Source: Macrostomum lignano (Eukaryota). Taken from it: a stretch of 64,000 nt of DNA. The position numbers and the translations under genes are program-made. The DNA lies in the NCBI GenBank assembly GCA_002269645.1, contig NIVC01000387.1, positions 372,001 through 436,000 of the forward strand. Direction: 5' to 3'. Under the pieces are notes generated by a model, which worked only from the letters and a program-made list of their open reading frames with translations, made no database searches and was not told where the DNA came from. Numbering within the stretch: the stretch's first letter is position 1; every line of letters starts with the position of its first letter. Positions 308 through 55,036 of the stretch are shown in pieces.

Positions 308-3300
308 ATGCAGCTGCTACAGTCAGAGCTATTGGCAGTCCTGATTGTGCTGCTAATACCAGGTGAGTACGAACTCAAATCCTGCTTGTTGATGTCTCTC
401 AGAGCTCAGAGCTTAAGCGAGATCCCCACTGTTCAAGACAAGTCAGGACAAAAAATTTCCTGTGAGAAGTTTCTTGAAAGCTGACCTTTCAGATAGTCTG
501 CAAGCTTCTATAGCTGTCCGGGATGGCAGCAAGTTCAAGATTTTCTCAAGTCAAGATTGCAAAGAATTTTGTTAGAAATCGGTCACTCTGGCAGGCAGAC
601 GGATCGCAACAGTCTGGAATCGCTCCGAAACTGAACCATTTCAAATACTTTGCTTCCCAACAGAGCCGGGCGCGAGCTCTGTACGCATTTGGGACTGCCA
701 ATTCCAATTATGCCAGCCGTAGACTGGCAGCGGGGGTCCAAGGGGCTCCGACTAATTTGCTTTACGAGCCCTGCGGGTGCCATGCGGCCGTGCCGCGCTG
801 CCGGCGGTCAATGGGCTGATGAATGACAGGGCGGCCCAGAACTGGGATTGCTGCAGCCCTGCCCTCCTCCTGCAGCATTCGATCCCGATCGTTAGAAGCT
901 CCACGCAGCTGCTGTAAGAGAAAAGGCGATGAAGAGATTGGGTGTTTAGGTTTGAAACACTGGCGATCTGCGGCAGCAGTACAGAATGCACTATTTCCGG
1001 TACACTGGGTTTCTCCTATTGCGGCTGTATGCAACTCCGCTGTACAGTGTCAACAGATCCAAACAGAACTCCTTTAGCGCGAACAGATGAATGTTATAAG
1101 TCTTCCATAGGTTTGATTCAATACAACAGCATGCTAATGACCTTCCTTGAACCCCGGGCTGAAGTGTCCCAGACGGGCTACCACGAGCGGCGCCTGCTCT
1201 ACTACCTGTTCCACCCGAACAACCGCAGCAGCGCCCTGCAGGTGCACAACCCGGTTGAGCGCCCGGTGAGAAACGACTCAGGCGTCCTCTATGTCTGGTT
1301 CAAGGTCTCGCTACAGCAAATTATCGACGTGGTGAGCTGTGAAAATTGTTGACGGTAAGGTAAACTATCATCAAATTATTAATCCAATTTCCATAAAATT
1401 TTAGGATGAGAAAAATCAGATCCTATTTGCCAACATTTGGCTTGATCTGGTAAGTCGGAGACGTCGCTTTTTGCAACCAACCATTGTTACTTTATGCCTG
1501 TGTCCAGCTGCAAAATTTCAATTTTGACTGCAAACTAAAAGACGGAATACATATACACGCTAATGCATTTCAATGCGAAATTCTCACCGCCTACACAAAC
1601 TACACGATTCGCCAGTGTTGCGTCCTTCTTAACATAAGTTTTTACTGGTCCTTACTTAAGCAACGCAAGAAGGGCCACTGAGAACACTCGGGTAGCAATG
1701 TAAACCTTCCTGAATTCAAAATTTTCAGGAAGCATGTGGGCTGTGTGCAGCTTATAGTCGACCAATAATACACTCGTAGCCAGCGGGGAGGCTCTTAGAC
1801 TCACCCTGAGCACTCACTAGGATACGTACGAGTACAGAGGCACACTCGGTGATTGACAACTGTAATTATTGTCATCATGGCAGTCTGTGCTGTGAGTTGT
1901 CTTTATAATGAGTGGAAAGCGCACGAGTCCCGGACTGCTACCTATCCAGTTAGCCAGTTTGGGCACAAGTTTTGCTATCAAAATCAAAGAGACCTTGACC
2001 TCACCTCCGCTGGTTGCACTTGCAGACTTGGAACGACTATCATTTCGTGTGGGACCCGAAGGACTTTGGTGACATCACAAAAATCAACATCGACCCTCGC
2101 AAAGTGTGGCGGCCGGATATCCTGCTGTACAACAGGTCAGTGGATTTGCGAGGGAGGCGTTTCAATGCAAACTGGAGTTTTTCGGTTCATTCCAGGTTCA
2201 AGGAGGTCATGAATAAAACTACCAAAAACCGCATAGAAAGCACTAAGGAACCAAATCAATGATCAACCTTGTATATGCAAATTTTTGCGACACCGTATAA
2301 AGGCCGATTCACATTGCCACTAATAGCTGGCTCGGCGGGTCAGATTGCTCAAATCGAGTACAGTTTGTTCGCACCCGTTTAAAAATTGATTTGAGCCATC
2401 TTTGGCCAAATCAAAAGCCAAAAGGGATTGTTGCCTAGTGGTTAGAGCGTCGGACTCACGACTTGAAGTTCGGGGGTTCGATTCTCGATCCTACTGGAAC
2501 GATTCGTGTCCAAGGACCACTAGAATTTACCATGCCAGTGTTGCGTCCTGATACAACGGTAACTTCTAGTGGTCCTTGTTCGTGTCCTTGAGCAAGACAC
2601 TTAACTCTGCATTGCTTCAGTTCACCCAGCTGTAAAATTGGTGCCAGCATTAGCTGGGGTAATTAAGGGTGTGTGGCGAACCCCCCCCCCCCAGTCCTTG
2701 GACTGAACAGCCGTACGCAGCCTGTATTCAGCGTACTCAGCCTGTCGGTTGCACATCTGGCCCTAATTGGGGCGCGTGTAATCAATTATATTATTATCAT
2801 TAAGAGCATCGTGCGCATCGAACGGGTAACGCAACGTAAATAACTGGCACAACATAATGCCACCCTGGTCCTCACAACTGACTCATCACGCTAGCGATTA
2901 ATCAATAAAGGTTTCGAGCTGCGTCAGGAACTCTCGAAAACTTCACCCAAAAACTGCCCGCGCCCCTCGCCCCACAGCGCGGACGAAAAATTCGATGGCA
3001 CCTACCCGACAAACGTGGTGATTGAGCACACAGGCAACATGAACTTCATCCCGCCGGGCATGTTTCGCTCCACCTGCAAGATCGACACCACCTGGTTCCC
3101 GTTCGACACTCAGATCTGCAAGCTGAAGTTCGGCTCCTGGTCCTACGACGGCGGCACGCTGGACCTGCGGCTCAAGTGCTCCAACGAATCGCTGGACACC
3201 ACGGAGAAGCGGCTCAGCGACCCCCAGCGCTGCTCGGAGGTCGGCCAGGCTGATCTGGAGACCTACATCACCAGCGGCGAGTGGAGCCTGGAAGGCAAGA

Positions 3301-6300
3301 GAACGAAATTTTCTTTAGATAAATCAGACTTTATACGCAGTTTCTCTACTTCCAGTAGCAACTTGGCGCAGTAGACTCGTGCTTTGCTTGGCGACTTGAC
3401 GTTGCTCCTTTACACTCCTTGTATAATTGATTTGTCCTGTTAACTATCCCACTGGCTCACAGTGAATAAATATAAAATTTACAACGCCAAGAGACTGACT
3501 ATTTTGTCTTTGCTAACACCATTACAGCACCATTGTAAATAACAGCACTGCTAGTCTAAACATATCAATAGTGATATAGTAATGATATAATAGTGCATTA
3601 TATCGATCGCAGCATCTTGTCCCGAGTGCCAGAGCCAATTATTCCCACCGGGTCTCATTTGCTTCAACCCCCCCCCCTTAACTCTCCGCTCCGCCAGGCG
3701 TCCCCGGCGTGCGCACGGCCGCCAAATACGACTGCTGTCCCTACCCGTTCATCGACCTGAGCTACTTCATCCGGATCCGCAGGCGGACTCTGTACTACGG
3801 CATCAACCTCATCATCCCCTGCGTGCTCATCTCAACTATGTCGCTGCTCACCTTCCTGCTGCCGCCGGATGCTGGCGAGAAGATCTCTTTGGGTGCGTGT
3901 CCTGGGTAGCCGGCCGAACCGGCTCCGGTGTCCGGTACCCGGTAACCAAAAAATAGCGCCGGGAACCGGAAACTGGTTATCCCCAGAGACCTAGTCTTAG
4001 TCGAAATACCAGTCCAGCAAATGCAGGCATGATGATCATGCTGTCACACACAACACAGTTCCACTTGCAGGCGTGATGATCATGCTGTCACACACAACAC
4101 TTCCAATTGCAGGCGTGATGATCATGCTGTCACACAACACAGTTCCAATTGCAGGCGTGATGATCATGCTGTCACACACAGTTCCAATTGCAGGCGTGAT
4201 GATCATGCTGTCACACACAGTTCCAATTGCAGGCGTGATGATCATGCTGTCACACACTGTTCCAATTGCAGGCGTGATGATCATGCTGTCACACACAGTT
4301 CCAATTGCAGGCGTGATGATCATGCTGTCACACAACACAGTTCCACTTGCAGGCGTGATGATCATGCTATCACACACAACACAGTTCCACTTGCAGGCGT
4401 GATGATCATGATGTCACACACAACACAGTTCCACTTGCAGGCGTGATGATCATGCTGTCACACAACACTGTTCCACTTGCAGGCGTGATGATCATGATGT
4501 CACACACAACACAGTTCCACTTGCAGGCGTGATGATCATGCTGTCACACAACACAGTTCCACTTGCAGGCGTGATGATCATGCTGTCACACAACACTGTT
4601 CCAATTACAGGCGTGATGATCATGCTGTCACACAACACTGTTCCAATTGCAGACGTGATGATCATGCTGTCACACAACACAGTTCCACTTGCAGGCGTGA
4701 TGATCATGATGTCACACACAACACAGTTCCACTTGCAGGCGTGATGATCATGCTGTCACACACAACACAGTTCCACTTGCAGGCGTGATGATCATGCTGT
4801 CACACAACACTGTTCCAATTGCAGACGTGATGATCATGCTGTCACACACTGTTCCAATTACAGGCGTGATGATCATGCTGTCACACAACACTGTTCCAAT
4901 TGCAGGCGTGATGATCATGCTGTCACACAACACAGTTCCACTTGCAGGCGTGATGATCATGATGTCACACACAACACAGTTCCACTTGCAGGCGTGATGA
5001 TCATGCTGTCACACAACACTGTTCCAATTGCAGGCGTGATGATCATGCTGTCACACAACACAGTTCCACTTGCAGGCGTGATGATCATGCTGTCACACAC
5101 AACACTGTTCCAATTGCAGGCGTGATGATCATGCTGTCACACACAACACTGTTCCAATTGCAGGCGTGATGATCATGCTGTCACACACAACACTGTTCCA
5201 ATTGCAGGCGTGATGATCATGCTGTCACACACTGTTCCAATTACAGGCGTGATGATCATGCTGTCACACAACACTGTTCCAATTGCAGGCGTGATGATCA
5301 TGCTGTCACACAACACAGTTCCACTTGCAGGCGTGATGATCATGCTGTCACACACAACACTGTTCCAATTGCAGGCGTGATGATCATGCTGTCACACACA
5401 ACACTGTTCCAATTGCAGGCGTGATGATCATGCTGTCACACACTGTTCCAATTACAGGCGTGATGATCATGCTGTCACACAACACTGTTCCAATTGCAGG
5501 CGTGATGATCATGCTGTCGCTGTCCATGTTTCAACTGCTGGTGGCCGACTCCATGCCCAAGACGTCCGAGGCGGTGCCCCTGATCGGTGAGGCTCGTTCT
5601 GTGGGAGCAGCAGTGGACAGAGTTTATACATTTCGTAGTTCTAGAAGAGCATCTATATCTGCACTTGCTTCAAGGTGGTCAGGTGTGCAGCCAACAGCAC
5701 AGCCGCTGCAAAAAGCTCGCACATTGCTTTGATTGCGTGAGGGTCGCAGCTGACACCCTGTAAATGTTACATGCATTTCTACCCAATCACAGCAGCGTGA
5801 GCTGGAGCTCAGCTTAATTTTTTATTCGCACACGGTGGCTGGCGTAACTTAACAGATGACTCAACCAGCTTATTAAGCTGCGTACTAACCGGGACCATCT
5901 TTTCTTAACTTTGCCAATTTGCTGACCCACTGGGCTAGGCGGCTCTCAAATTTCAGGTCATAATTATTGAATGGTAACAATTTTAATATAGTAACGTATA
6001 TGTCAGGAGTTAATTTATGCATTGCAGTGATGTACTTCACCTGCACGATGGTCATGTGCAGCCTGTCCGTGGTGTTCACCGTCATCGTGCTCAACTATCA
6101 TCACCGGGACGCTGAGTCGCATCCTGTGCCGCGATGGGTGAGGCTAGCTGTCTTGATAATTCAATATTCAATTCTGAGTTTGCTGGTGTCAGCTTCCAGG
6201 TGTCAGCTTCCAGGTGTCAGCTTCCAGGTGTCAGCTTCCAGGTGTCAGCTTCCAGGTGTCAGCTTCCAGGTGTCAGCTTCCAGGTGTCAGCTTCCAGGTG

Positions 6301-7167
6301 TCAGCTTCCAGGTGTCAACTTCCAGGTGTCAGCTTCCAGGTGTCAGCTTCCAGGTGTCAGCTTCCAGGTGTCAGCTTCCAGGTGTCAGCTTCCAGGTGTC
6401 AGCTTCCATCTGGACCTTGGTTTCAGCTCCCAGGCATTCCATCTGGACCCTGGTTTTAGCTCTCTGGTATCCCATCTGGACCTTGTTTTCAGCTCTCTGG
6501 TATCGAACCTAGACTTTTGGTGTCAGCTCACAGGTGTTCCGTTCTCCGTGCATTCACTGACTCAGAGCTCGTGTTCCATCAGCGGAAGTGATGCAGTGCA
6601 ATGCAATTTCTACACAAAAATTCACCATCTAAAATCCTCCAGGTGAAGAAGTTCATCTGCACTTACCTGGCAAACATCCTGTGCATGAAGAACCACCGCC
6701 AGGAAGAGGCCGAACAGGAGTTCATCCGGCTGAGGCGCCCGAAGAACTTTGCCGCCGCCGCGGCCGCCGCGTCAGCCGCCGCCTCGCACCGTGGCGCGTC
6801 GTTCCGCGATACCGCCGGAGCGGCGGGGCTGCCGCAGCGACCCTCCAAGTCCCTGCTGGCCAACGTGCTCGATTTGGAAAATGGCGTCCAGACGGTCAGC
6901 GGCGGTGTCGATGGCGGTTGCGGCGTAGGTGGAGGCGGAGGCGGCGGTGGTGGCGGCGGCAACCCCAACGGTCTGTCGGTGGTGCTGGACGAGCTGCGCA
7001 TCGTCACGCGGAAGATCGCCGACGACACGACGGCGTCGGATATCAGCAGCGACTGGAAATTCGCGGCTCGCGTGGTGGACCGGCTCTGCCTGATTGTCTT
7101 CTCCTGCTTCACCGTCATCTCCACCTGCTCCATCCTGTTCTCAGCGCCCGACGTCTACAAAGGCTGA
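308..7167 (+). CDS. Nicotinic acetylcholine receptor alpha subunit, alpha7-like (Cys-loop ligand-gated ion channel), 9 exons, about 536 aa
   Basis: Hand-spliced join(308..362,1165..1331,1405..1449,2026..2135,2978..3294,3698..3892,5500..5586,6028..6137,6643..7167) = 1611 nt, open, all phases consistent. It contains a signal-peptide-like exon 1 ([18 protein letters not shown]), [16 protein letters not shown], Cys-loop [15 protein letters not shown], loop B WSY, loop C vicinal cysteines YDCC (alpha type), M1 [14 protein letters not shown]...GEKISLG, M2 exon [28 protein letters not shown]3 and M4 ([14 protein letters not shown]). All introns are GT-AG except 3295..3697 (GC-AG). Confidence 0.95.
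1603..1660 (+). mobile_element. Degenerate fragment related to the SINE at 2424-2802
   Basis: ACGATTC-GCCAGTGTTGCGTCCT...TGGTCCTT is colinear with 2499-2577. It shares an exact 16-mer (1611-1626 vs 2534-2549) but lacks the left hairpin arm. Confidence 0.45.
2424..2802 (+). mobile_element. tRNA-derived SINE with CORE-like domain, in nAChR intron 4
   Basis: A-box-like TAGTGGTTAGAGCG and B-box GGTTCGATTC. Downstream CCTTGAGCAAGACACTTAAC...CAGTT...CTGTAAAATTGG resembles the MIR/CORE-SINE core (CCTTGGGCAAGTCACTTAAC...CAGTTT...CTGTAAAATGGG, from memory). Ends in an (ATT)n-like tail near 2785-2802. Confidence 0.75.
4023..5518 (+). repeat. 39/42/44-bp minisatellite (about 35 copies) whose unit contains the splice acceptor and first 19 nt of the nAChR M2 exon
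   Basis: Unit (ACAC[AC][AAC]AC(A/T)GTTCCA(A/C)TTGCAG|GCGTGATGATCATGCTGTC). The last copy runs directly into the unique M2 exon at 5500. Confidence 0.97.
6185..6408 (+). repeat. 14-bp minisatellite (CTTCCAGGTGTCAG) x16 in nAChR intron 8
   Basis: Near-perfect tandem array starting about 48 nt after the donor at 6138. Confidence 0.95.
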
Positions 7168-7240
7168 GGAATTTCATGGGGGGGGGGGGAATCCCGGCCG
7201 GAGGCCGAATCTCAGACGGGAACATTGAAATTAGATGGGA

Positions 7241-7700
7241 GGGAAATCCCAAGGGGAATCCTAAGGAGGGAAATACCAAGGGAAATCTAAGAAGGGAAAT
7301 CTAAGAAGGGAAAGGGAAAGGGAAACTAAGGGAAACTAAGAAGGGAAATCCCAAGGGGGAATCCTAAGGAGGGAAATCCCAAGGGGGAATACTAAGAAGG
7401 GAAATCCCAAGGGGGAATCCTAAGGAGGGAAATCCCAAGGGGGGAATACTAAGAAGGGAAATCCCAAGGGGGAATCCTAAGGAGGGAAATCCCAAGGGGG
7501 AATACTAAGAAGGGAAATCCCAAGGGGGAATCCGAAGGAGGGAAATTCCAAGGGGGAATACTAAGAAGGGAAATCCCAAGGGAGAATCCTAAGGAGGGAA
7601 ATCCCAAGGGGGAAACCTAAGGAGGGAAATCAAAAGGGGAATCCTAAGGAGGGAAATCCCAAGGAGGGAAATCCTAAGGGGAAATCCTAAGGAGGGAAGT
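7241..7700 (+). repeat. 28-bp purine-rich minisatellite just 3' of the nAChR stop (probable 3' UTR)
   Basis: AGGGAAATCCCAAGGGGGAATCCTAAGG units, alternating with ATACTAAGA variants. Confidence 0.9.
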
Positions 7701-12761: not shown

Positions 12762-14975
12762 TGCTGATCACATTGCTTCCATACTGATCACATTGCTTCC
12801 ATGCTGATCACATTGCTTCTTATACTGATCACATTGCTTCCATGCTGATCAAATTGCTTCCATGCTGATCACATTGCTTCCATACTGATCACATTGCTTC
12901 CATGCTGATCACATTGCTTCCATGTTGATCACATTGCTTCCATGCTGATCACATTGCTTCTCATACTGATCACATTGCTTCTCATACTGATCACATTGCT
13001 TCCATGCTGATCACATTGCTTCCATGCTGATCAAATTGCTTCTATGCTGATCACATTGCTTCCATGCTGATCACATTGCTTCTCATACTGATCACATTGC
13101 TTCCATGCTGATCCCATTGCTTCTTTGCTGATCACATTGCTTCTCATACTGATCACATTGCTTCCATGCTGATCACATTGCTTCTCATACTGATCGCATT
13201 GCTTCCATTCTGATCCCATTGCTTCCTTGCTGATCACATTGCTTCTCATACTGATCGCATTGCTTCTCATACTGATCGCATTGCTTCCATGCTGATCACA
13301 TTGCTTCCATTCTGATCCCATTGCTTCCTTGCTGATCACATTGCTTCCATGCTGATCACATTGCTTCCATGTTGATCACATTGCTTCCATGCTGATCACA
13401 TTGCTTCTCATACTGATCACATTGCTTCTCATACTGATCACATTGCTTCCATGCTGATCACATTGCTTCTCATACTGATCACATTGCTTCCATGCTGATC
13501 CCATTGCTTCTTTGCTGATCACATTGCTTCTCATACTGATCACATTGCTTCCATGCTGATCACATTGCTTCTCATACTGATCGCATTGCTTCCATTCTGA
13601 TCCCATTGCTTCCTTGCTGATCACATTGCTTCTCATACTGATCGCATTGCTTCTCATACTGATCGCATTGCTTCCATGCTGATCACATTGCTTCCATTCT
13701 GATCCCATTGCTTCCTTGCTGATCACATTGCTTCTCATACTGATCGCATTGCTTCCATGCTGATCACATTGCTTCCATGCTGATCACATTGCTTCAATGC
13801 TGATCACATTGCTTCCATTCTGATCCCATTGCTTCCATGCTGATCACATTGCTTCTCATACTGATCACATTGCTTCCATGCTGATCACATTGCTTCTATG
13901 CTGATCACATTGCTTCCATGCTGATCACATTGCTTCCATGCTGATCACATTGCTTCCATGCTGATCACATTTCTTCTCATACTGATCACATTGCTTCTCA
14001 TACTGATCACATTGCTTCCATGCTGATCACATTGCTTCCATGCTGATCACATTGCTTCTCATACTGATCACATTGCTTCCATGCTGATCACATTGCTTCC
14101 ATGCTGATCACATTGCTTCCATTCTGATCCCATTGCTTCCATGCTGATCACATTGCTTCTCATACTGATCGCATTGCTTCCATGCTGATCACATTGCTTC
14201 CATGCTGATCACATTGCTTCCATGCTGATCACATTGCTTCTATGCTGATCACATTGCTTCCATGCTAATCACATTGCTTCTCATACTGATCACAATGCTT
14301 CCATGCTGATCACATTGCTTCCATGCTGATCAAATTGCTTCTATGCTGATCACATTGCTTCCATGCTGATCACATTGCTTCCATGCTGATCACATTGCTT
14401 CCATGCTGATCACATTGCTTCCATGCTGATCACATTGCTTCCATGCTGATCACATTGCTTCCATGCTGATCACATTGCTTCCATGCTGATCACATTGCTT
14501 CTCATACTGATCACATTGCTTCCATGCTGATCACATTGCTTCCATGCTGATCACATTGCTTCCATGCTGATCACATTGCTTCCATGCTGATCAAATTGCT
14601 TCCATGCTGATCACATTGCTTCCATGCTGATCAAATTGCTTCCATGTTGATCACATTGCTTCCATGCTGATCACATTGCTTCCATGCTGATCACATTACT
14701 TCATGCTGATCACATTGCTTCCATGCTGATCACATTGCTTCCTTACTGATCACATTGCTTCCATGCTGATCAAATTGCTTCCATGTTGATCACATTGCTT
14801 CCATGCTGATCAAATTGCTTCCATGTTGATCACATTGCTTCCATGCTGATCACATTGCTTCCATGCTGATCACATTACTTCATGCTGATCACATTGCTTC
14901 CATGCTGATCACATTACTTCATGCTGATCACATTGCTTCCATGCTGATCACATTGCTTCCTTACTGATCACATTG
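12762..14975 (+). repeat. 20/22-bp minisatellite (TGCTGATCACATTGCTTCCA / TACTGATCACATTGCTTCTCA), about 100 copies
   Basis: Direct inspection. Confidence 0.97.
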
Positions 14976-15636
14976 TTTCTCATGCGTATACACTGCAGTG
15001 TTTCCCCCAACTATCTAAGGCTGTCCGCCCCTCTGCATCGGTCCCGCTGCTTCCGCCACTGCAATTCCCAAACCATGGCCGCTGCATCTGCCCAGCTCTC
15101 ATGGAGTCATGCATCGGCAATGAGTGCGGTGAGTGTCAGCGAGAACCCTCCGAGCCTTGACTCCGATAAAAATGGCGGGCAACTTGGGTAGCCACAGCGG
15201 GACTCAAGCCGCATTCTTCATCCATTTGTGGCCCACTTTTCCTCTTCTCCAGAAAATGCTGGCCTGGCGACGGGAGCAGCTGCTGGGGCAAAACAATTGC
15301 ATGGGGAGGCTGGGGATGAAGAATGCATATCATGGCAGGGACCTGGGCGAGAGTCTCCCAGCCAATGGCAGCAGCGGGGCTTGCCTGAGATCGATGGGTT
15401 TGGGTGCCCGGCTCTCGCTCTCATTCTCAACCCCCCCCACCTCCTCCTTCGCCTTTCGGTCTCGTCCAGCTGAAAAGCTGCGCCAAGCAGCGCTGGCTGC
15501 CTGAAAGCAACATCTATCATTGCTTTGCGGCTAAGTAGCCACATAGAAATCCTCCCCGAGGCGAGCAGGCGCGAGGCTGGCTGGACTTTAGTCTCAGGCA
15601 AAGAGCCAGGCTGAGAACGGAGGCGCCCAGCGGTCT

Positions 15637-22095: not shown

Positions 22096-25000
22096 CCAGA
22101 TCTCTCACCCTTAGCTGAGCAGCAAACTCTCCAGTGTTAAGCGCACGAAGCTGCTCAGCCCTCCTTTTTCAGGAAGACTCCTTCTTCATTTCGCATTCAG
22201 GTCTCGTCCTCGTCTTCGCCCAGTTTCCAGCCACTCCCTCATCAACGGTGCAGCAGTTCGCGGCTTCCTGCCCGGCTCAGTTGGGCCGCCCGGCCGCCTC
22301 AGGCAGCCCCAGGCAAGGGGCAGGCGAGTTTGCTCACAAACAGAGCAATAGCAGAGCAAATACAAGAAAGAAAACTTGCCGCTAAAAATAGACGAAAAAC
22401 TAAAAGAATAACCGCTGAAACTTGTCAGCAAAAGCAGAGCCGGCTGCAACAAAATCCTTCGAGAGTACGGCATCGATTGCTGCTTGCTCTCGAAGCGGCG
22501 GACCTGCCGCGCCCCGGGTCAGCGGGAGAAGTCCGCCTGCCGGAAGCTCGGCTGGGGGGAGCGCTGGTTCAGGGATGACGGATCGGAGGCAGCTGGACCG
22601 TTCAGAGGCGATAAATATTAATGCTTCCACTGCCCCTCAGCCTCCAGGCTTGCCCGGCAGGCAGGACTGCTCCGGTTTGTTGCGCCCTGGTTCAGCAGCG
22701 CTTTCCTCTTTCAGTGCAGTCCAGATCAATCTCATGTCTTCTCGATCCCCTGCTTCCTCCAGACTCCTTTTCCCTCTCAACCTCCTCTTTGCCCTCTCTT
22801 TTCTCCCCTCTCTTTTCTCCCCTCTCTTTTCTCCCCTCTCCTTTCTTCCCTCTCCCCTCTCCTCTCCCCTCTCTCTTCTCTCCTCTCTAATCTCCCCCTC
22901 TAATCTCTCGCCTCTCCTCTCTCCACTCTCTTCTTTTTCTATCCTCTCTCCCCTCTCCTCCCTCTCCTCTCTCCTATCCAATCTCATATTTCTTTTCTTT
23001 TAAAAACATTCAAATCTTTTACTCCTCTAAAACCAGAGCTCCTCACCGCTCCCTTTCCAAATCCTCGATTCTATTTTTGATCAAGCCGAAGTCCTTTGTT
23101 TTCCTCCCTCCTGCTGGCAGAGGCTCGGCTTGCTTTCGGCACCTTTTTTAGCCAGCAGCCTTCGTTCGTTCTTTCTTTCTTCGACTCTCTTCGCCTCAGC
23201 TTCTGCCGTTTAGCGGGGGCTCGTCAGGCAGCCTTCCTCCCCCGCCCCCGCTCCGCGCCGCTGACGCACCGGCAGCTTGGCAGCAGTCCAGGCCGGCCCG
23301 ATCCGCAGCCCCAGATAAGAGCAGCCCAGCGGCAGGAGCACCAGCTCTCCCTGGCCAGCGCTAAAGTACCTCAGTGCCTCGGCTCACAACTGTCCCATTT
23401 TCGCATTTTAATTCACGCATCCAGGCTATTGGGCCGGCAGTTCTTCCGAGTGGCCGCTGATTAAACATTTCATCGGCAAAGGAGAATGAGATAAGAAACG
23501 CCCACTAAAAGCCCCGCATGCCCATTGTGGAATTATTGTCAGAGTGGGACGGGCGCTCAGTGAGTGCTGAGGAGAAACGGTGCGGCTGAAGGAGGCAGCC
23601 AGTGGGAGCTCCTCCCTGCCTGTGCAAAGAAAAATAGAGAAGGAGAGGGTAGAGACAGAGAGGGGGAGAGGCAGCCTCTCCACTTCAGCGGCTCCGACCT
23701 GCTGAGTGGCCGCTGGCTTGGGCGACGGAAAGTGGAGGCCGCCTCCTCCCTGCCCTCGCGGCTACGGACCATCGACCAGCCCGGCTGCGGCCCACCCCAG
23801 GCCGGCGCCAACCCCGCCTGCCGCGTACGCTGGAGGACTTCCCCAAGCCTGCACCTCTCCTCTCCCTTCCCCTGTCTCTCCCACTCCCCCTTTGCTCCCC
23901 GCAGCCCCAAGCCATTTATCTGCAGTAGGCAGCCCCCCCCCCTCTGTGCTTTGGCGATGCCAAATTTGCATCTCTTGAGCCGGCGATTCCTCATGCCAGC
24001 CGAGTTTTGACAATTGCCGCAGCACAATAGCCCTGCTAGCCCCGCGGCGGAGCACTTTGAGGCGATGCTTCCGTCTGAGCAGCCGCTCTGCCGCGCCCGC
24101 CTGGCATAGCCGCCACCGGCCACTCGAGTTCAGCGAGAAAGTCGCGCTGGGTGGCGCCCGGAGCCAAGTTGAGAAACAGTCGGCGCTGGCTGGTCTTCCA
24201 AGTGAGTGCGCCGGAGCCGCGGCTGAAGTGCCGGCCCGGCTTCCGCTGGGGAGTGCCGCTTGGGCTAAGATCCCTGAGCATCCTGGTGTGAGTTGCCGCT
24301 CTGGACTGACCACAGCGGCTGAGTGGGTGCCATTGCGTGAGGCCGGTGAGATCAGCATTCAATCCCACTGCTGAGTCTTGATTAGCTTCGCGTTCCTCAG
24401 CTCCCAGGGAATACATTATTCCTTTCTCGCCTCCGCAACCGGCATCCCATTTCTGTCGGAAATTGCTGGGATCAGTCATGAAATATGAATGCAGTTATTA
24501 GGAATTAGTAGGCTGACGCTCCGGCTGACGAGAGTTCCTATAAGAAATGACCCATTTTCATCCTAATTGCCATCATAGCCCGGTTTGGCCCATAGACAAT
24601 GAAGCGTCGATCAGCTGATTTGCGCGTGTCAAGTTTGAATTGAAAAAAAAACATTAAAATCCATGTTGCTTTTAACGCTAATCCACAGGGGATTAGTGTA
24701 CGGATTAGTGTAAGGGCAGCACTCAGCTGTGGAATGTCCAGCCCGGCCCCACCAGTCAGGTCAATCGCAGCGGAGCGCGGGCGCAGAATTCAGCACACTG
24801 CCAGTTCCAACAGGCTAACTGCTTTTGAGCTGGGCGGTTAGCGTTTTTATAGGCATTTGTTGGATAAGCTGCCCAAGGCAAGCGCCGCATCCCATACTGT
24901 CCGAGTCCCGAGCCGGCCCGCGGGGCTCAGACTCTCTTCCCCATCGGATGGAAAAAGGGTGGAGAAGCTGGAAAGGCCCGACTGTGTGTTGTTTTAATGG

Positions 25001-25571: not shown

Positions 25572-30201
<4,630 letters not shown>

Positions 30202-34247: not shown

Positions 34248-37200
34248 TCAGACCGCGCTATCTTCGAGCAGCGGCTCCAGCACGTGGCCACCAGTTTCGG
34301 CCTCCGCAGCCACGTCTGCGGCCGCAACCGCCTTTGAAGTTGCCGAATTGGCGTCCGCCGCTTCAGCCGCAGCTCCGCCGTTGCGGGCCCCGCGCAGGGA
34401 GGCGGAGGCGGAGGCCGAGCTGTGGAGGGTTGACCTCAGCGACGACCCGATCGAATCCATCTGCCGCGACCGCCAGCGCCGCTTCCTCCATTCTCCCACG
34501 CCGCTGCCGCCACCCACGCCACCATTGCCGCCGCCGCAGCCGCCACCGCCTCCTCCAGCACCGCCGCCCCTGACGCCGACGCCACCGCCGCCACCGCCAC
34601 CGCCGCCGTGGAAGCAAGCGAGTCGCAGCAGGCGGTCGAAGGCGGTGCGGAACTGCTTGGACATGCCGTAGTAGAAGATGAAGTTGATGCTGTGGTTGAA
34701 CAGCGTCATGAGGTCGAACAGATCTCCCAGGGGGTCGTAGAACTGGCTGGTGAAGCAGTTCTTCGCCTGCTGGGACGACAGCGAGCCGAGCACCAGGAAA
34801 ATGACGCCCTGGGGAGCGCAAAGCCAGACGAAGGGAAACTGCCGAGCTGTTGGCCAGTTTTTGATGAAGCAGGAAGCTGGATGAGAATTTTATGACCCGT
34901 TCTGTCTGGAAATGCTGATGACCCGCATAATCTTGGCAAAAATACTTCCAGCGCCCCGGGCCAAAATCCCAGTCCTGATAAAAGTGCATGGCAGTTTTCG
35001 CTCCTCAGCTCTTCTTTGGCTCTCAAATGGATGAAAAATAGACAAGAGAGGACGTTGCTAAAAGAGCGCAGGGCTTCCCGCGACTGCACTCGGGAGAAGT
35101 AAACAAGGCTCACATTATTGAAAACAAATGACGCAAACAAGCAGTGCTGAGAGCTCGAATTGCTGATTGAAAGGCTGAAAATGTGCCATCCGTTGCGAGC
35201 TGAGGCAAGTCGGCCCGATGCATTTTTGTGGGAGCAGAGGGAAGTAACCAGATGGGTAAGATCAGGGAAGTCTTGAAGCTCAAGATTGAGCTTGAGCCGC
35301 CGTGGCTTCAGGTTGCGCGAGAGGGTTAGGGTGAGGAAGAGGGTGAGGGTGAAGGAGAGGGTGATTATGAGGGAGAGAGTGAGGGAGAGGATGAGGGAGA
35401 GGGTGAGAGAGAGAGGGTGAGGGAGAGGGTGAGGGAGAGGGTGAGGGAGAGGGTGAGGGAGAGGGTGAGGGAGAGGGTGAGGGAGAGGGTGAGGGAGAGG
35501 GTGAAGGAGAGGGTGAGGGAGAGGGTGAGGGAGAGGGTGAGGGAGAGGATGAGGGAGAGGGTGAGGGAGAGGGTGAGGGAGAGGGTGAGGGAGAGGGTGA
35601 GGGAGAGGGTGAGGGAGAGGGTGAGGGAGAGGGTGAGGGAGAGGGTGAAGGAGAGGGTGAGGGAGAGGGTGAGGGAGAGGGTGAGGGAGAGGGTGAATGA
35701 GAGGGTGAGGATGAGACGAAATTACGGAGACGGAGAAGAAGCAGGAAGAGAAGCTGTGGAAGCAAAAATGGGATAAATAATAAGAGTGAGTTGATGAAAC
35801 ACGGAAGCAATAAAGGTCCTAGATATTTATGAGTAGAATAATGTGAGCAGTAGAAGGCAGAGCAGTGCTCGGCCGGTGCTCAGCCAAGCGGTCAAATCGC
35901 TGAGCAGAACTCTGCAGGAGCCGATCTGCTCAGCCTCTGCTCGGCGGCAGGAAGCCGGGGGCACGGAAAGAAAATCGAACTGCTGGGGGACGGGCAGATG
36001 AGTTGCCGCCCTAATCAGTGAGCCTCGTTATCGACAGTTTATTCCTAGGAACGAGTCGCCGGCTTTGCAGCCGAGCTGGCCAAGTGAAAGCTGCGGCTCT
36101 CAGATGTCCGCCCGTGAGCGCTCATCTGCTTTAGCGGCCAGACAGCTGTTGTTTGGCGACGCGGAATATGCGAGTCGGAGGGGGGGGGGGCAGGGCGCAG
36201 ACGCCTGCGAAAGCGAATATCCTTGCGCCACAGGACACGCCAGGCTTGTCTTGCCTCCGAGTTGCGGGCGCTGCGGCCAAATACTCGTAAGAGCCTCAAT
36301 ATCAGCGGCTTTGTCACTGGAGGGGGAGGGGAGGGGCTCTCATTACCAGTCAGACTCGACAATTCAGAGGAAGCCCGGCTCGATGTGAACTCTGTGTACT
36401 TTTCCGCTGCAAGTTCACTGAGGGTTGATTGATCGCTCGGAGTTCCTGAACCGCTAATGAGAGCATCAGTCAGGCGCGCAAGAACTTACCTGGGGCAGAA
36501 TGCTGAGCACGCTGACCAGGATGATCGTCATGAGAAGCTTGGTGGTCCGGTTCGACTGAGCGTCGTCCCCGCCGCCGCCGCCGCCGCCGCCACCGCCACC
36601 GCCACCGCCAGCCGTCGTGGATGACGAAGCCAGAGCCTGGCGGGCAGCCACTGCGGCGGCGGCGGCGGCAGCGGCAGCAGGAGTTGGCGCGGCCACCTGG
36701 ACTGCTCGCCTGCTGCTGGCCCGCAAGGTGCGCCGCCTCCGCACCGTCCGACGAAGCGACCGGATGAGGAGGACGCTGAGAATGGTAAGCAGCAGCACCG
36801 GGAGGCACTTGATGAAGATGCCGATGACCCAGAAGTTCACGCTGTTGATGGTATCGTTGTCTCTCATGCGGAACTCGTAAAAGGTGGAGTTGGCGGCCAG
36901 CCGGAGGCGGCAGGAGTTCAGCTTCTGCTCCACGAGGGGAGACTCCACGGGGCTGATTTTGTGACCGAAGATGTTGGGCACCAGCATGCAGACGGAGGCC
37001 AGCAGGGACAGGCCGATGGCCAGGCAGGATGTGCGCACCGTGCAGAGCTGCTTGCTGCGCACCGGCAGCTTGATGTAGATGAGGCGGAACACCGCCAGCG
37101 CCACCGTCACCCAGGAGCTGAGCGCGTGCGCCAGGATGACGATGCACACCTGGATCCACAGGAACAGCAGCCAGGCGTACGGCTCCGGACAGCCGAGCTT

Positions 37201-37569
37201 CAGCCGGCCGCCCATGGTGAAGTAGAGGCAGAACGGCAGGTACACCGCCGACATGACGCAGTCGGAGACGGCCAGGGCAGTCAGCAAGGTGTTGGTTGGG
37301 TTTCGCATTGAGCGCTGGCAGAGTACAGCAATGTTGAGTAGGTTGGTTGCTGCACCAAAACTGCACAGAGCCACAGCCAGGTACTTGTGCGCCTCCGCGT
37401 AGGCCTCCGAGAACGCCTGCAGCGCCTGCGGTGGCCGACAAGCGGCTTCTTGGGCGAGGCTGTCGTTTGCGCTAGCGTTACCCAGAAAGTCTCTGTCCAG
37501 AGTCGGTGGCAGCAGCGAGAGCAGCGTTGTCGGATCCACCGGGACCAAGATGGCCGCGCTGCCGTCCAT
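34248..37569 (-). CDS. Rhodopsin-like peptide GPCR, myosuppressin/FMRFamide (DmsR/Srw-type) receptor-like, 2 coding exons, about 546 aa
   Basis: complement(join(34248..34808,36490..37569)), phase-0 intron CCCCAG|GTAAGT...CCCCAG|GGC. Seven hydrophobic segments with DMS-R-like motifs: NLLNIAVL...[51 protein letters not shown]...[33 protein letters not shown]. Poly-Ala/Gly tracts in ICL3 and the tail. The start Met is uncertain (see findings). Confidence 0.9.
35325..35710 (+). repeat. 12-bp purine-rich minisatellite (GAGGGAGAGGGT) in GPCR intron
   Basis: Direct inspection. Confidence 0.95.
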
Positions 37570-53187: not shown

Positions 53188-55036
53188 ATGAACGAAGCGG
53201 CCCTGTGCCTCAACCAGAGCAGCTACCATGCCGGCGAGATTGTCTACGGCGCCGCCTACATCTGCATCTGCCGGCCAACGCAGATTCGCTCGCTGCAGAT
53301 TCGCATCCAGGGCACCGAGACTGGTTAGTTCTGCTCTGTCATCTGTAGTCTCTGTAGCAGCTATGAGCAATAGAGCACTTCAAGCTGCGACTTACATAGA
53401 ATCGAGTTTGGGACCTCTGGAATGGTTGGCGCTCGCTGGGCGCGGGTCCTGACCGAAGCCTATTGCCCTGGTCCGCTGCTGGGGCTGGGGTTGAAAGGGG
53501 CGAACCCAGCCAGCCAAGAGAAGTCCACTCTCGAACTGCAATCTCCATTTCCAGTCACGTGGAGCCGGCGCAAGGGCCAGAGCAGCTCAGCCTGCCTCAT
53601 CGACCAGTCCTACGAGCTGCTCAGCTTGCCCCAGCCAATCCCGTTCGGCAGCTACCTGATCCCCTTCAAGCTGCCGCTGCCCAATCTGCTGCCCGCCAGC
53701 TTCTACTTTGCCGAGTTCGACGAGCTCTGCTGCGAGGCCAGCGACCTGCCCGAGGCCTGCCGGGTGGCCTACAGCATCAGCCTGGCGTCGCCGCAGAGTC
53801 AGCGCTTCGGCGCCCGCCTCGACCTGCTGGTGGACGAGGAAGTGCCGGGCTCCGAGGAGGCGCTCTCGGTGAATGACTCGCTGAACCTGTCCGTCATCCC
53901 GGCCATGCGCAAGACGCTGCGACTCGGCCTCAGCCTGGACCGGCAGGCTGTCCGCTTCGGCGAGTTTCTCACCGTCACCCTGCGGCTGGTCAATGAGACC
54001 CGGCGGACCATCGAGAACGTCGCCATCAAGCTGCTGCGCCGCATCTCCGTGACCTGCGTTGACAACGGCGAGCAGCTGCAGCAGTTGCAGCCGCACGATC
54101 CGACCAAGTGTCCGCACTGCGTCAGCGTCTGCTCTACATGGTGGTCCATGCTCATGCCCGGCAGCGATCCTGAGGTCAGGCTGCGGGATCTGTCAGTCGC
54201 GTGGGATCTGTTAGTGCAGGCCGTGGGATCTGCCAGTGCAGGCTGTGGGATCTGCCAATGCAGGCTGTGGGATCTGTTAGTGCAGGCCGTGGGATCTGCC
54301 AGTGCAGGCTGTGGGATCTGCCAGTGCAGGCCGTGGGATCTGCCAGTGCAGGCTGTGGGATCTGCCAGTGCAGGCTGTGGGATCTGCCAGTGCAGGCTGT
54401 GGGATCTGCCAGTCGCGTGGGATCTGTTAGTGTAGGCTGTGGGATCTGCCAATGCAGGCTGTGGGATCTGTTAGTGCAGGCCGTGGGATCTGTTAGTGCA
54501 GGCCGTGGGATCTGTTAGTGCAGGCCGTGGGATCTGTTAGTGCAGGCTGTGGGATCTGCCAATGCAGGCTGTGGGATCTGCCAATGCAGGCTGTGGGATC
54601 TGCCAGTGCAGGCTGTGGGATCTGCCAGTAGATCTATGTAAAGCTTGGTTCCACATCCCCGCAGGTGATCGAGTGCGGCTTCGACGATCTGAAGATCCCG
54701 ATCCCGTCGCCAACGCCGTGCGACTTCGCACAGACGGTGAACTCGCACCGGCTCACCTGCCAGCACTTCCTGCAGTTGCTGGTGTCGCTGGACGGCGGCC
54801 GTCGCCTCCAGACGGAGGTCCGCCTGCCGCTGGTGCGCGCCCACGCCGGTGCGCAGTCGGCCACCTGGCAGCAGCTCGAGCAGCCGCTGCCTCATTGGCT
54901 GGCCGGCTGCTCGGCTTTGCTCAGCCAGTCGGCCAGCTTGCCGCTGCGGCCCGACGAAGTGCTGGGCACCAACTTTGCCGGCATGCCGGTGCTGCGCTCG
55001 CTGCCCGCCAGCGCTTTGGTCACCGACTTTGCCTGA
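53188..55036 (+). CDS. Arrestin-fold (alpha-arrestin/ARRDC-like) protein, 3 exons, about 375 aa
   Basis: join(53188..53323,53555..54174,54665..55036) = 1128 nt, phases consistent. Arrestin_N-like YHAGEIVYG...IRSLQIRIQGTETVTW...GSYLIPFKLPLPNLLPASF...VAYSI. Arrestin_C-like LSLDRQAVRFGEFLTVTLRLVNETRRTIENVAIKLLR. Confidence 0.85.
54181..54628 (+). repeat. 22-bp minisatellite (GTGGGATCTGCCAGTGCAGGCT), about 20 copies, filling arrestin intron 2
   Basis: Begins 7 nt after the donor and ends about 35 nt before the acceptor. Confidence 0.95.

Follow-up and report, generated by a model that had tools for sequence, protein, structure and literature searches.

The window examined here is a 64,000-nucleotide (nt) stretch of the flatworm Macrostomum lignano (contig NIVC01000387.1, positions 372,001 to 436,000, assembly GCA_002269645.1), and it carries a gene for an alpha7-like nicotinic acetylcholine receptor (nAChR) subunit. 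In the intron that precedes the exon for the second, pore-lining transmembrane segment (M2), the acceptor splice site has itself become the unit of a minisatellite. Thirty-five copies of the intron end and exon start, each with its own AG, stand before the real acceptor, which is the last of 36 and the one used in the deposited gene model. The gene is maintained by purifying selection, and the array is probably a near-neutral or slightly costly passenger and not a device. All positions below are those of the window unless a locus is named.

Tandem Repeats Finder (TRF) reports a single array at this place, with a period of 42, 35.7 copies, 92% matches and a score of 2310 (Table 1). Each unit consists of the exon start, GCGTGATGATCATGCTGTC, followed by the intron end, CACA(CA)(AC)AC(A/T)GTTCCA(A/C)TT(G/A)CAG, so that the final 20-25 nt of the intron are repeated together with the initial 19 nt of the 87-nt M2 exon. 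The core GATGATCATG occurs 36 times, always within 4027-5518 and nowhere else in the window, and an AG stands directly before every one of these copies. All 35 upstream units hold AG/GCGTGATGATCATGCTGTC or a one-base variant of it, and they measure 42 nt (16 units), 44 nt (12 units) or 39 nt (7 units); the last, partial copy of 19 nt is formed by bases 5500-5518 of the M2 exon itself. With many head-to-tail units in the range of 10-100 nt, the array is a minisatellite in the usual sense. Sixteen unit types can be distinguished, in the order GHIEEJEBKDLDBMANDOAPABDABCCCFABCCFA, and the repeated blocks in this order (...ABCCCFABCCFA) fit growth of the array by unequal exchange. An earlier reading made from the letters alone (the sequence-only reading) had described the unit as the intron end plus the first 19 nt of the exon and had counted about 35 decoys before 5500, a description that TRF and parsing by the core bear out. 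The junctions that it placed at 3892 (donor), 5500 (acceptor) and 5586 (donor) are correct in the sequence, as is its observation that the first copy, which reads GCATGATG, has Met for Val.

We translated the product of every acceptor, 36 in all, on into the exons that follow. The frame remains open to the normal stop from three of them only, namely 5500, which gives the normal protein, 5458, which adds 14 amino acids (aa), and 5419, which adds 27 aa. The other 33 lead to a TGA inside the array, mostly in the unit following the first 44-nt unit; acceptor 5375, for instance, shifts the frame and meets a TGA after 16 codons. The consequences foreseen in the sequence-only reading for these three decoys, and the breaking of the frame by 44-nt units, were thereby reproduced. 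Some variants in the units would alter M2 residues, with G replaced by D at 4', V by M at 5' and L by M at 9'.

The decoys closely resemble the real site. Nine acceptors, the real one and eight decoys, are identical over -23 to +19; a full unit also precedes the real acceptor, and such decoys show no difference from it from at least -42 to +19. Therefore, the information that discriminates the real site lies outside that span, and since more repeat units lie upstream, its mark is most likely 3' of 5518. After +19 the real exon continues with GCTGTCCATG..., has 63% GC over its remaining 68 nt and ends in a good donor (ATCG/gtgagg), whereas the decoys have 43.5% GC and continue with the CA-rich ACACACAAC..., of the form ACACA(CA)ACAC..., and then with the next decoy. 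In pyrimidine content (0.61) the real acceptor does not stand out among those of the gene, which span 0.56 to 0.78. Folding of the RNA of 5290-5600 gave a z of +1.2, no better than shuffled sequences, and revealed no structure hiding the decoys. The 8-nt palindrome ATGATCAT, found in every unit, was considered as a decoy-hiding structure and rejected as too weak.

Table 1. Features of the nAChR gene and of the minisatellite at its M2 acceptor (window positions).
Feature	Position	Strand	Remarks
alpha7-like nAChR subunit gene, whole coding region	308..7167	+	BOX15_Mlig015854g1, PAA84143.1 (P0121); nine coding exons
Coding exons	308-362, 1165-1331, 1405-1449, 2026-2135, 2978-3294, 3698-3892, 5500-5586, 6028-6137, 6643-7167	+	open segments joined at canonical sites
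M1 exon, 195 nt	3698..3892	+	ends in ...GEKISLG, the Gly with 1 nt of its codon; donor TTGG/gtgcgt after 3892
Unique 5' part of intron, 125 nt	3893..4017	+	57.5% GC over 3893-4026; intron without array about 150 nt
Minisatellite	4018..5518	+	35 full units (39, 42 or 44 nt) and a 19-nt terminal partial unit; TRF and core parsing
First decoy AG	4025..4026	+	upstream context gcaaatgcag differs, no unit before it; copy after AG is GCATGATG
Last two units (39 + 42 nt)	5419..5499	+	insertions from 5419 and 5458, the sole frame-keeping decoys (+27, +14 aa)
Authentic acceptor AG, ttgcag/GCGTGA (5499/5500)	5498..5499	+	exon-proximal, last of 36; used in deposited gene model
M2 (pore) exon, 87 nt	5500..5586	+	5500-5518 repeat; unique from 5519, 63% GC; donor ATCG/gtgagg after 5586

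The identity of the host gene, which the sequence-only reading had taken to be an alpha7-type nAChR, is supported by Pfam domains (Neur_chan_LBD, 2.1e-59; Neur_chan_memb, 8.6e-50) and by the named Macrostomum homologues of the protein, which are called alpha-7. Matches outside Macrostomum, at 44-52% identity, are alpha7-like subunits from nemerteans, brachiopods, molluscs and arthropods. The translation contains both a Cys-loop (C-x13-C) and the vicinal Cys pair of loop C (YDCC), the defining motifs of alpha-type nAChR subunits. The exon sizes of 45, 110, 195, 87 and 110 nt agree with those of vertebrate CHRNA7. On these sequence grounds the product is a predicted pentameric ligand-gated ion channel subunit of the alpha7-like (alpha7/ACR-16) type. 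Our spliced translation of 536 aa equals the deposited PAA84143.1 at every residue. The junction at the array splits a Gly codon at M2 position 4' (EKISLG stands before it), and, when numbered against human alpha7, the repeated 19 nt code for M2 residues 4' through 10', among which 6' and 9' line the pore. The intron after exon 2978-3294 has a GC donor (AAG/gcaaga, 3294/3295), and the older ab initio models P0002, P0003 and P0123 are mis-spliced there, with part of the M1 exon skipped or intron read.

The assembly holds three copies of the gene, that of the window (locus L003, which matches contig NIVC01000387.1 with 0 mismatches over 17,167 nt), L001 (NIVC01004712.1) and L004 (NIVC01003901.1). 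The flanks of L001 and L004 are about 97% identical to the window, and the two are 98.3% identical to each other. Both carry the same array at the same place, with 12 units as against 35 in the window; the comparison of copy number that the sequence-only reading had suggested thus reveals, between gene copies, the variation by which a variable number tandem repeat (VNTR) is defined. The shorter arrays contain a CACGCA variant that is absent from the window array, two truncated 24-nt units without an AG and degenerate copies at the 5' end, which leaves nine AG decoys, and their last unit is of 39 nt where that of the window is of 42 nt. Because the three contigs differ in length and in private variants, a simple assembly artefact is excluded for the array, as the sequence-only reading had also argued, and the exact number of 35 rests on one assembly.

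Tandem repetition is common in this genome, as simple and tandem repeats make up 15% of it (PMC5730564), and 39 tandem arrays, 26 of them of at least 300 nt, cover 31.6% of the window, about twice the genome-wide figure. Arrays with an AG or a CAG/GT in each unit also lie in other introns of the window, and the spliceosome of M. lignano encounters decoys of this sort as a matter of course. It is not surprising that an array should be born astride a splice junction in such a background. The nearest paralogue (P0007/P0008, loci L002 and L005) is 69-86% identical in protein and has no such array; the intron in question there holds an unrelated 32-nt minisatellite in its middle and passes into the exon as ...cccccGATCATGCTGcgcaatcgaactcatcccag/GAGTGACAATTATGCTGTCAC. 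The 10-mer GATCATGCTG, which forms +7 to +16 of the M2 exon in the window, sits at -31 to -22 of the paralogue's homologous acceptor and occurs once in each paralogue locus (L002, 18.8 kb, at 5771-5780; L005, 28.6 kb, at 24888-24897), with a chance expectation of about 4e-5 for a given 10-mer in a 45-nt span. This is suggestive: the 10-mer may be the remnant of a duplication to two copies astride the acceptor, which would be older than the split of the paralogues. We suggest that the array arose from a tandem duplication of about 42 nt astride the acceptor, from -23 to +19. The paralogue exon reads GCTGTCAC, like the window units, and the piece originally duplicated may therefore have taken 21 exon bases and not 19, and so reached +21. 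The two-copy state would seem to predate the split from the nearest paralogue, and would have remained unchanged in one gene while the other grew, through unequal exchange or slippage during replication, to reach 12 units in two copies and 35 in the window copy.

In the paralogue locus L002 we also observed tandem alternative M1 exons (4093-4285 and 4940-5134) and M2 exons (5802-5888 and 6417-6503), and L005 has the same. The pairs look like mutually exclusive exons of the insect Dalpha6 kind. The database models P0004 and P0010 wrongly include both alternatives, and the window gene has one of each.

That noisy long reads were wrongly assembled into the array, or into the greater part of it, we regard as very improbable. 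The 35 copies do rest on one PacBio-based assembly, and minisatellite lengths are error-prone in assemblies. Against this stand the three contigs with the array at the same place, in different lengths and with private variants, the 16 unit types arranged in repeated blocks and the relic in the paralogue; the 14-nt array of the next-but-one intron also varies between copies (16 units in the window, 19.3 in L001).

The gene is under constraint. Its open reading frame (ORF) and all of its splice sites are intact. The window coding sequence differs from L001 at 17 bases (14 synonymous and 3 non-synonymous codon changes) and from L004 at 23 bases (18 synonymous and 5 non-synonymous). Codons 11 (V/A), 429 (P/H) and 452 (D/E) hold single-base differences by which the copies can be distinguished. 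Over 390 synonymous and 1218 non-synonymous sites, the ratio of non-synonymous to synonymous substitution rates (dN/dS, omega) is 0.069 for the window against L001 and 0.089 against L004, which departs from neutrality with P<1e-6 and from an omega of 0.5, the value for one lineage drifting freely, with P<=3e-4. The array-bearing copies are under purifying selection and the gene is alive; the sequence-only reading had entertained a dead copy, which the intact ORF and a dN/dS of 0.07-0.09 contradict. Over a dS of about 0.04, the protein has thus stayed under purifying selection in gene copies that carry 9 to 35 decoy acceptors.

The annotation of M. lignano was built from RNA sequencing (RNA-seq) data (STAR, StringTie, TACO) and a de novo transcriptome, and not ab initio (PMC5730564), and it joins 3892 to 5500 in all three gene copies. 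Older models based on the ML2 assembly join the same two positions, and may simply follow the open frame. No insertion isoform was found in the 90% protein cluster, which contains the three 536-aa copies and one fused model of 1895 aa, all with the canonical junction. A junction-spanning query of 144 aa retrieved foreign nAChR fragments of less than 250 aa only and none from this gene, and a query with the ORF in the frame of the array had no match in other assemblies or runs. The annotated junction is a consensus model, in which minor isoforms would not show. The sequence-only reading had offered selection of the last AG as the first of two alternatives, and this agrees with the deposited RNA-seq-guided model, which our splice model reproduced exactly.

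We consider it rather likely that the genome tolerates the array as a passenger, that exon definition picks out the last AG and that stray products of the decoys are mostly cleared as transcripts with a premature termination codon (PTC). Productive mRNA would then come from the exon-proximal acceptor, which alone precedes 68 nt of GC-rich exon and a strong donor at 87 nt, and exon definition would act on this difference. Leaky use of the decoys would mostly be removed by nonsense-mediated decay (NMD), because 33 of the 35 decoys give a premature stop, and in-frame insertions at the start of M2 would be expected from the two nearest decoys only.

Several points weigh against this account. The relic in the paralogue consists of a single 10-mer, and the whole unit aligns poorly to the end of the paralogue's intron (with a score of 2, which 8 of 582 windows attain). 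Exon definition does not on its own tell apart the last five or so acceptors, as the exons that they would yield, of 129-298 nt, are all of acceptable size. Upstream decoys are transcribed first and give shorter introns, and kinetic or intron-definition models would favour them. Clearance by NMD is a step that we infer for M. lignano. Moreover, the exon-exon junction is identical in sequence in the three copies, so that reads cannot be assigned to one of them and the annotation does not by itself prove correct splicing of the 35-unit copy. This last point, together with the existence of three copies of the gene, leaves some room for the proposal that the 35-unit copy is a redundant, poorly spliced duplicate, kept only because the sequenced DV1 line has additional copies of chromosomes, and that the 12-unit copies supply the receptor. 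We judge this improbable, as the window copy has an intact ORF and all of its splice sites, and the rejection of an omega of 0.5 argues against neutral drift of either lineage over a dS of about 0.04.

The insufficiency of exon definition and the early transcription of the decoys indicate that the passenger account needs an additional signal. This could be a positive one within 5519-5586 or a negative one in the CA-rich +20 to +30 of the decoys. In mammals, hnRNP L binds to CA-rich elements, which can silence splice sites in their vicinity.

Minisatellites that span a splice junction are a described class. The known examples include F7 (37 bp, 5-9 units), IFI6, also called 6-16 (25 pseudo-sites), CBS (31 bp), LMNB2 (100 bp) and PDGF (81 bp); in all five the site nearest the exon prevails, with some use of the next one or two in IFI6 and CBS (PMC1557585). 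A close likeness is to the VNTR in intron 7 of human F7 (Borensztajn et al. 2006, PMC1557585), in which the terminal monomer spans the exon-intron boundary, the pseudo-sites are identical and copy number is variable. In F7 only the exon-proximal site is used physiologically, and the pseudo-sites become functional once that site has been destroyed (PMC1557585). The F7 array concerns a donor, with 5-9 units that each take in 4 nt of exon, whereas the flatworm array, known from sequence, concerns an acceptor, with 12-35 units and 19 nt of exon in each. The 5'-to-3' scanning proposed for F7 would pick the first, wrong site in the flatworm array. In IFI6, CBS, LMNB2 and PDGF the junction is likewise reiterated inside the intron, 10-26 times, but these arrays are all donor-side and mammalian. 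By analogy with IFI6 and CBS, we would expect minor use of the acceptors at 5458 and 5419.

The 25-bp VNTR in intron 18 of human ABCA7 likewise starts at and includes a splice site, the donor of exon 18 (De Roeck et al. 2018, PMC5954066). A PTC results when one unit is retained, and array length changes the isoform ratios, which is the concept of a splicing rheostat (PMC5954066); the ABCA7 array differs from that of the flatworm in being donor-side, in having 12-427 units and in that the effect of its length comes from measurements in people. With NAGNAG and other tandem acceptors, too, one donor is contested by several AGs. However, NAGNAG AGs lie 3 nt apart and share a branch point and pyrimidine tract, whereas the flatworm AGs each stand in a module of 39-44 nt with its own candidate branch adenosines. 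In the open-access subset of the literature we found no junction-reiterating minisatellite on the acceptor side, which is not proof of absence. The window array reiterates a splice junction through its terminal monomer, at an acceptor in place of the donor of the described cases, and is an acceptor-side variant of known splice-junction-reiterating minisatellites. The sequence-only reading was right about the gene, the reading frames and the reality of the array, but overstated the novelty of its interpretation, given the donor-side precedents (PMC1557585, PMC5954066) and the repeat-rich genome; the rheostat concept itself is not new.

Applied to the flatworm, this concept would have the decoys capture a share of the pre-mRNA, so that a longer array leads to more NMD or to more insertions of half an M2 and tunes the dosage of the channel. 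The AG is kept in all 35 decoys, eight of which are identical to the real site over -23 to +19, a PTC follows from 33 of the 35, and copy number differs almost three-fold between gene copies. The length effect in ABCA7 (PMC5954066) and the use of near pseudo-sites in IFI6 and CBS (PMC1557585) also favour it, and tandem repeats with length-dependent effects on splicing are widespread in humans, where they have been catalogued genome-wide (PMC10078293). Nevertheless, the annotated transcript takes the last AG, and no insertion or frameshift isoform is on record in the protein collection. The conservation of the AG in the units is no more than chance would give: selection on the decoy AGs was considered and dropped, as 7 of about 39 unit positions vary and the probability that two given positions are unvaried is about 0.67, which is not significant. 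Such arrays fill a third of the window, so a special purpose need not be invoked, and a measurable effect of length would not alone show adaptation. The data can be explained without regulation through the length of the array, which we hold to be possible but unlikely.

A further proposal adds to such a setting of the productive fraction by array length that the 35 copies of half an M2 donate, by gene conversion or unequal exchange, to M2 codons 4' to 10' (the first six). The hints for it are the residue at 6' (codon ATG, 5505-5507), which is Met in the window gene and in all units, whereas the paralogue has Thr and 42 of the 70 distinct M2 segments among the retrieved homologues have Thr or Ser, together with the unit variants at 4', 5' and 9'. 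If this improbable proposal were true, pore-lining residues would evolve in concert with an intronic repeat.

The array could also serve some other purpose in RNA processing, such as trans-splicing of the spliced leader (SL) into it, with the leader joined to GCGTGATGATC in 5'-truncated transcripts, or recursive splicing unit by unit. Trans-splicing takes unpaired acceptors as its substrate and affects 38.8% of M. lignano genes (PMC5730564); yet the annotation pipeline cuts genes at trans-splice peaks and has left the window gene whole. As for recursive splicing, every unit reads AG/GCGTGA and regenerates no 5' splice site (GTRAGT), and use of the closest GT, which lies 3 nt further along, would leave 2 extra nt at every step and so disrupt the frame. 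The sequence of the units led us to reject recursive splicing, and NAGNAG as well, and a purpose of the array in RNA processing, be it trans-splicing or recursive splicing, is scarcely plausible. The passenger account, with the last AG chosen by exon definition, is the one that we prefer.

Other features of the gene and its surroundings were recorded. The 14-nt minisatellite GGTGTCAGCTTCCA lies at 6185-6408, in the intron 6138-6642 between the M3 exon and the last exon, and has a CAG/GT in each unit; its counterpart in L001 is at 14872-15141. A 28-nt array (GGAGGGAAATCCCAAGGGGGAATCCTAA, about 17 units) at 7238-7698 starts about 70 nt past the stop, probably in the 3' untranslated region, and has 6.6 units in L001. 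In the intron 2136-2977, a tRNA-like stretch (...GGTTAGAGCGTCGGACTCACGACTTGAAGTTCGGGGGTTCGATTCTCGATCC...) at about 2425-2700 is followed by a body resembling a short interspersed nuclear element and is present in L004 also; ARAGORN found no tRNA in this stretch. An innexin gene fragment is located at 28627-30201 on the + strand (Pfam Innexin, 3.8e-64), and a 21-nt array at 28791-29117, of 15.6 units that all contain an AG, stops some 50 nt short of the probable innexin acceptor ...ctccccag/ACTACTACCAGTGG. The window further contains an Srw/rhodopsin-like G protein-coupled receptor ORF at 36466-37569 on the - strand (7TM_GPCR_Srw, 1.3e-24) and an ORF at 53422-54435 on the + strand with a weak match to Arrestin_C (1e-5), just under the Pfam cut-off. 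A promoter and terminator scan was set aside, since its consensus is bacterial and irrelevant to this flatworm window.

The nAChR gene of M. lignano, with 36 acceptors of which nine are identical over -23 to +19, one donor and a working pore at stake, is a natural experiment on the choice of 3' splice sites. On the acceptor side it mirrors the human F7 model, from which 5'-to-3' scanning for donors had been argued. Here one would expect the wrong site from scanning, from first-come-first-served kinetics and from intron definition, and the right one from exon definition. Transgenesis and RNA interference by soaking are available in M. lignano, which makes the question testable in vivo. The case shows the load of decoys that is tolerated by the spliceosome in a genome of which 15% is simple and tandem repeats. 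If the decoys were measurably used, channel dosage would be modified by the copy number of the array, a trait both heritable and highly mutable.

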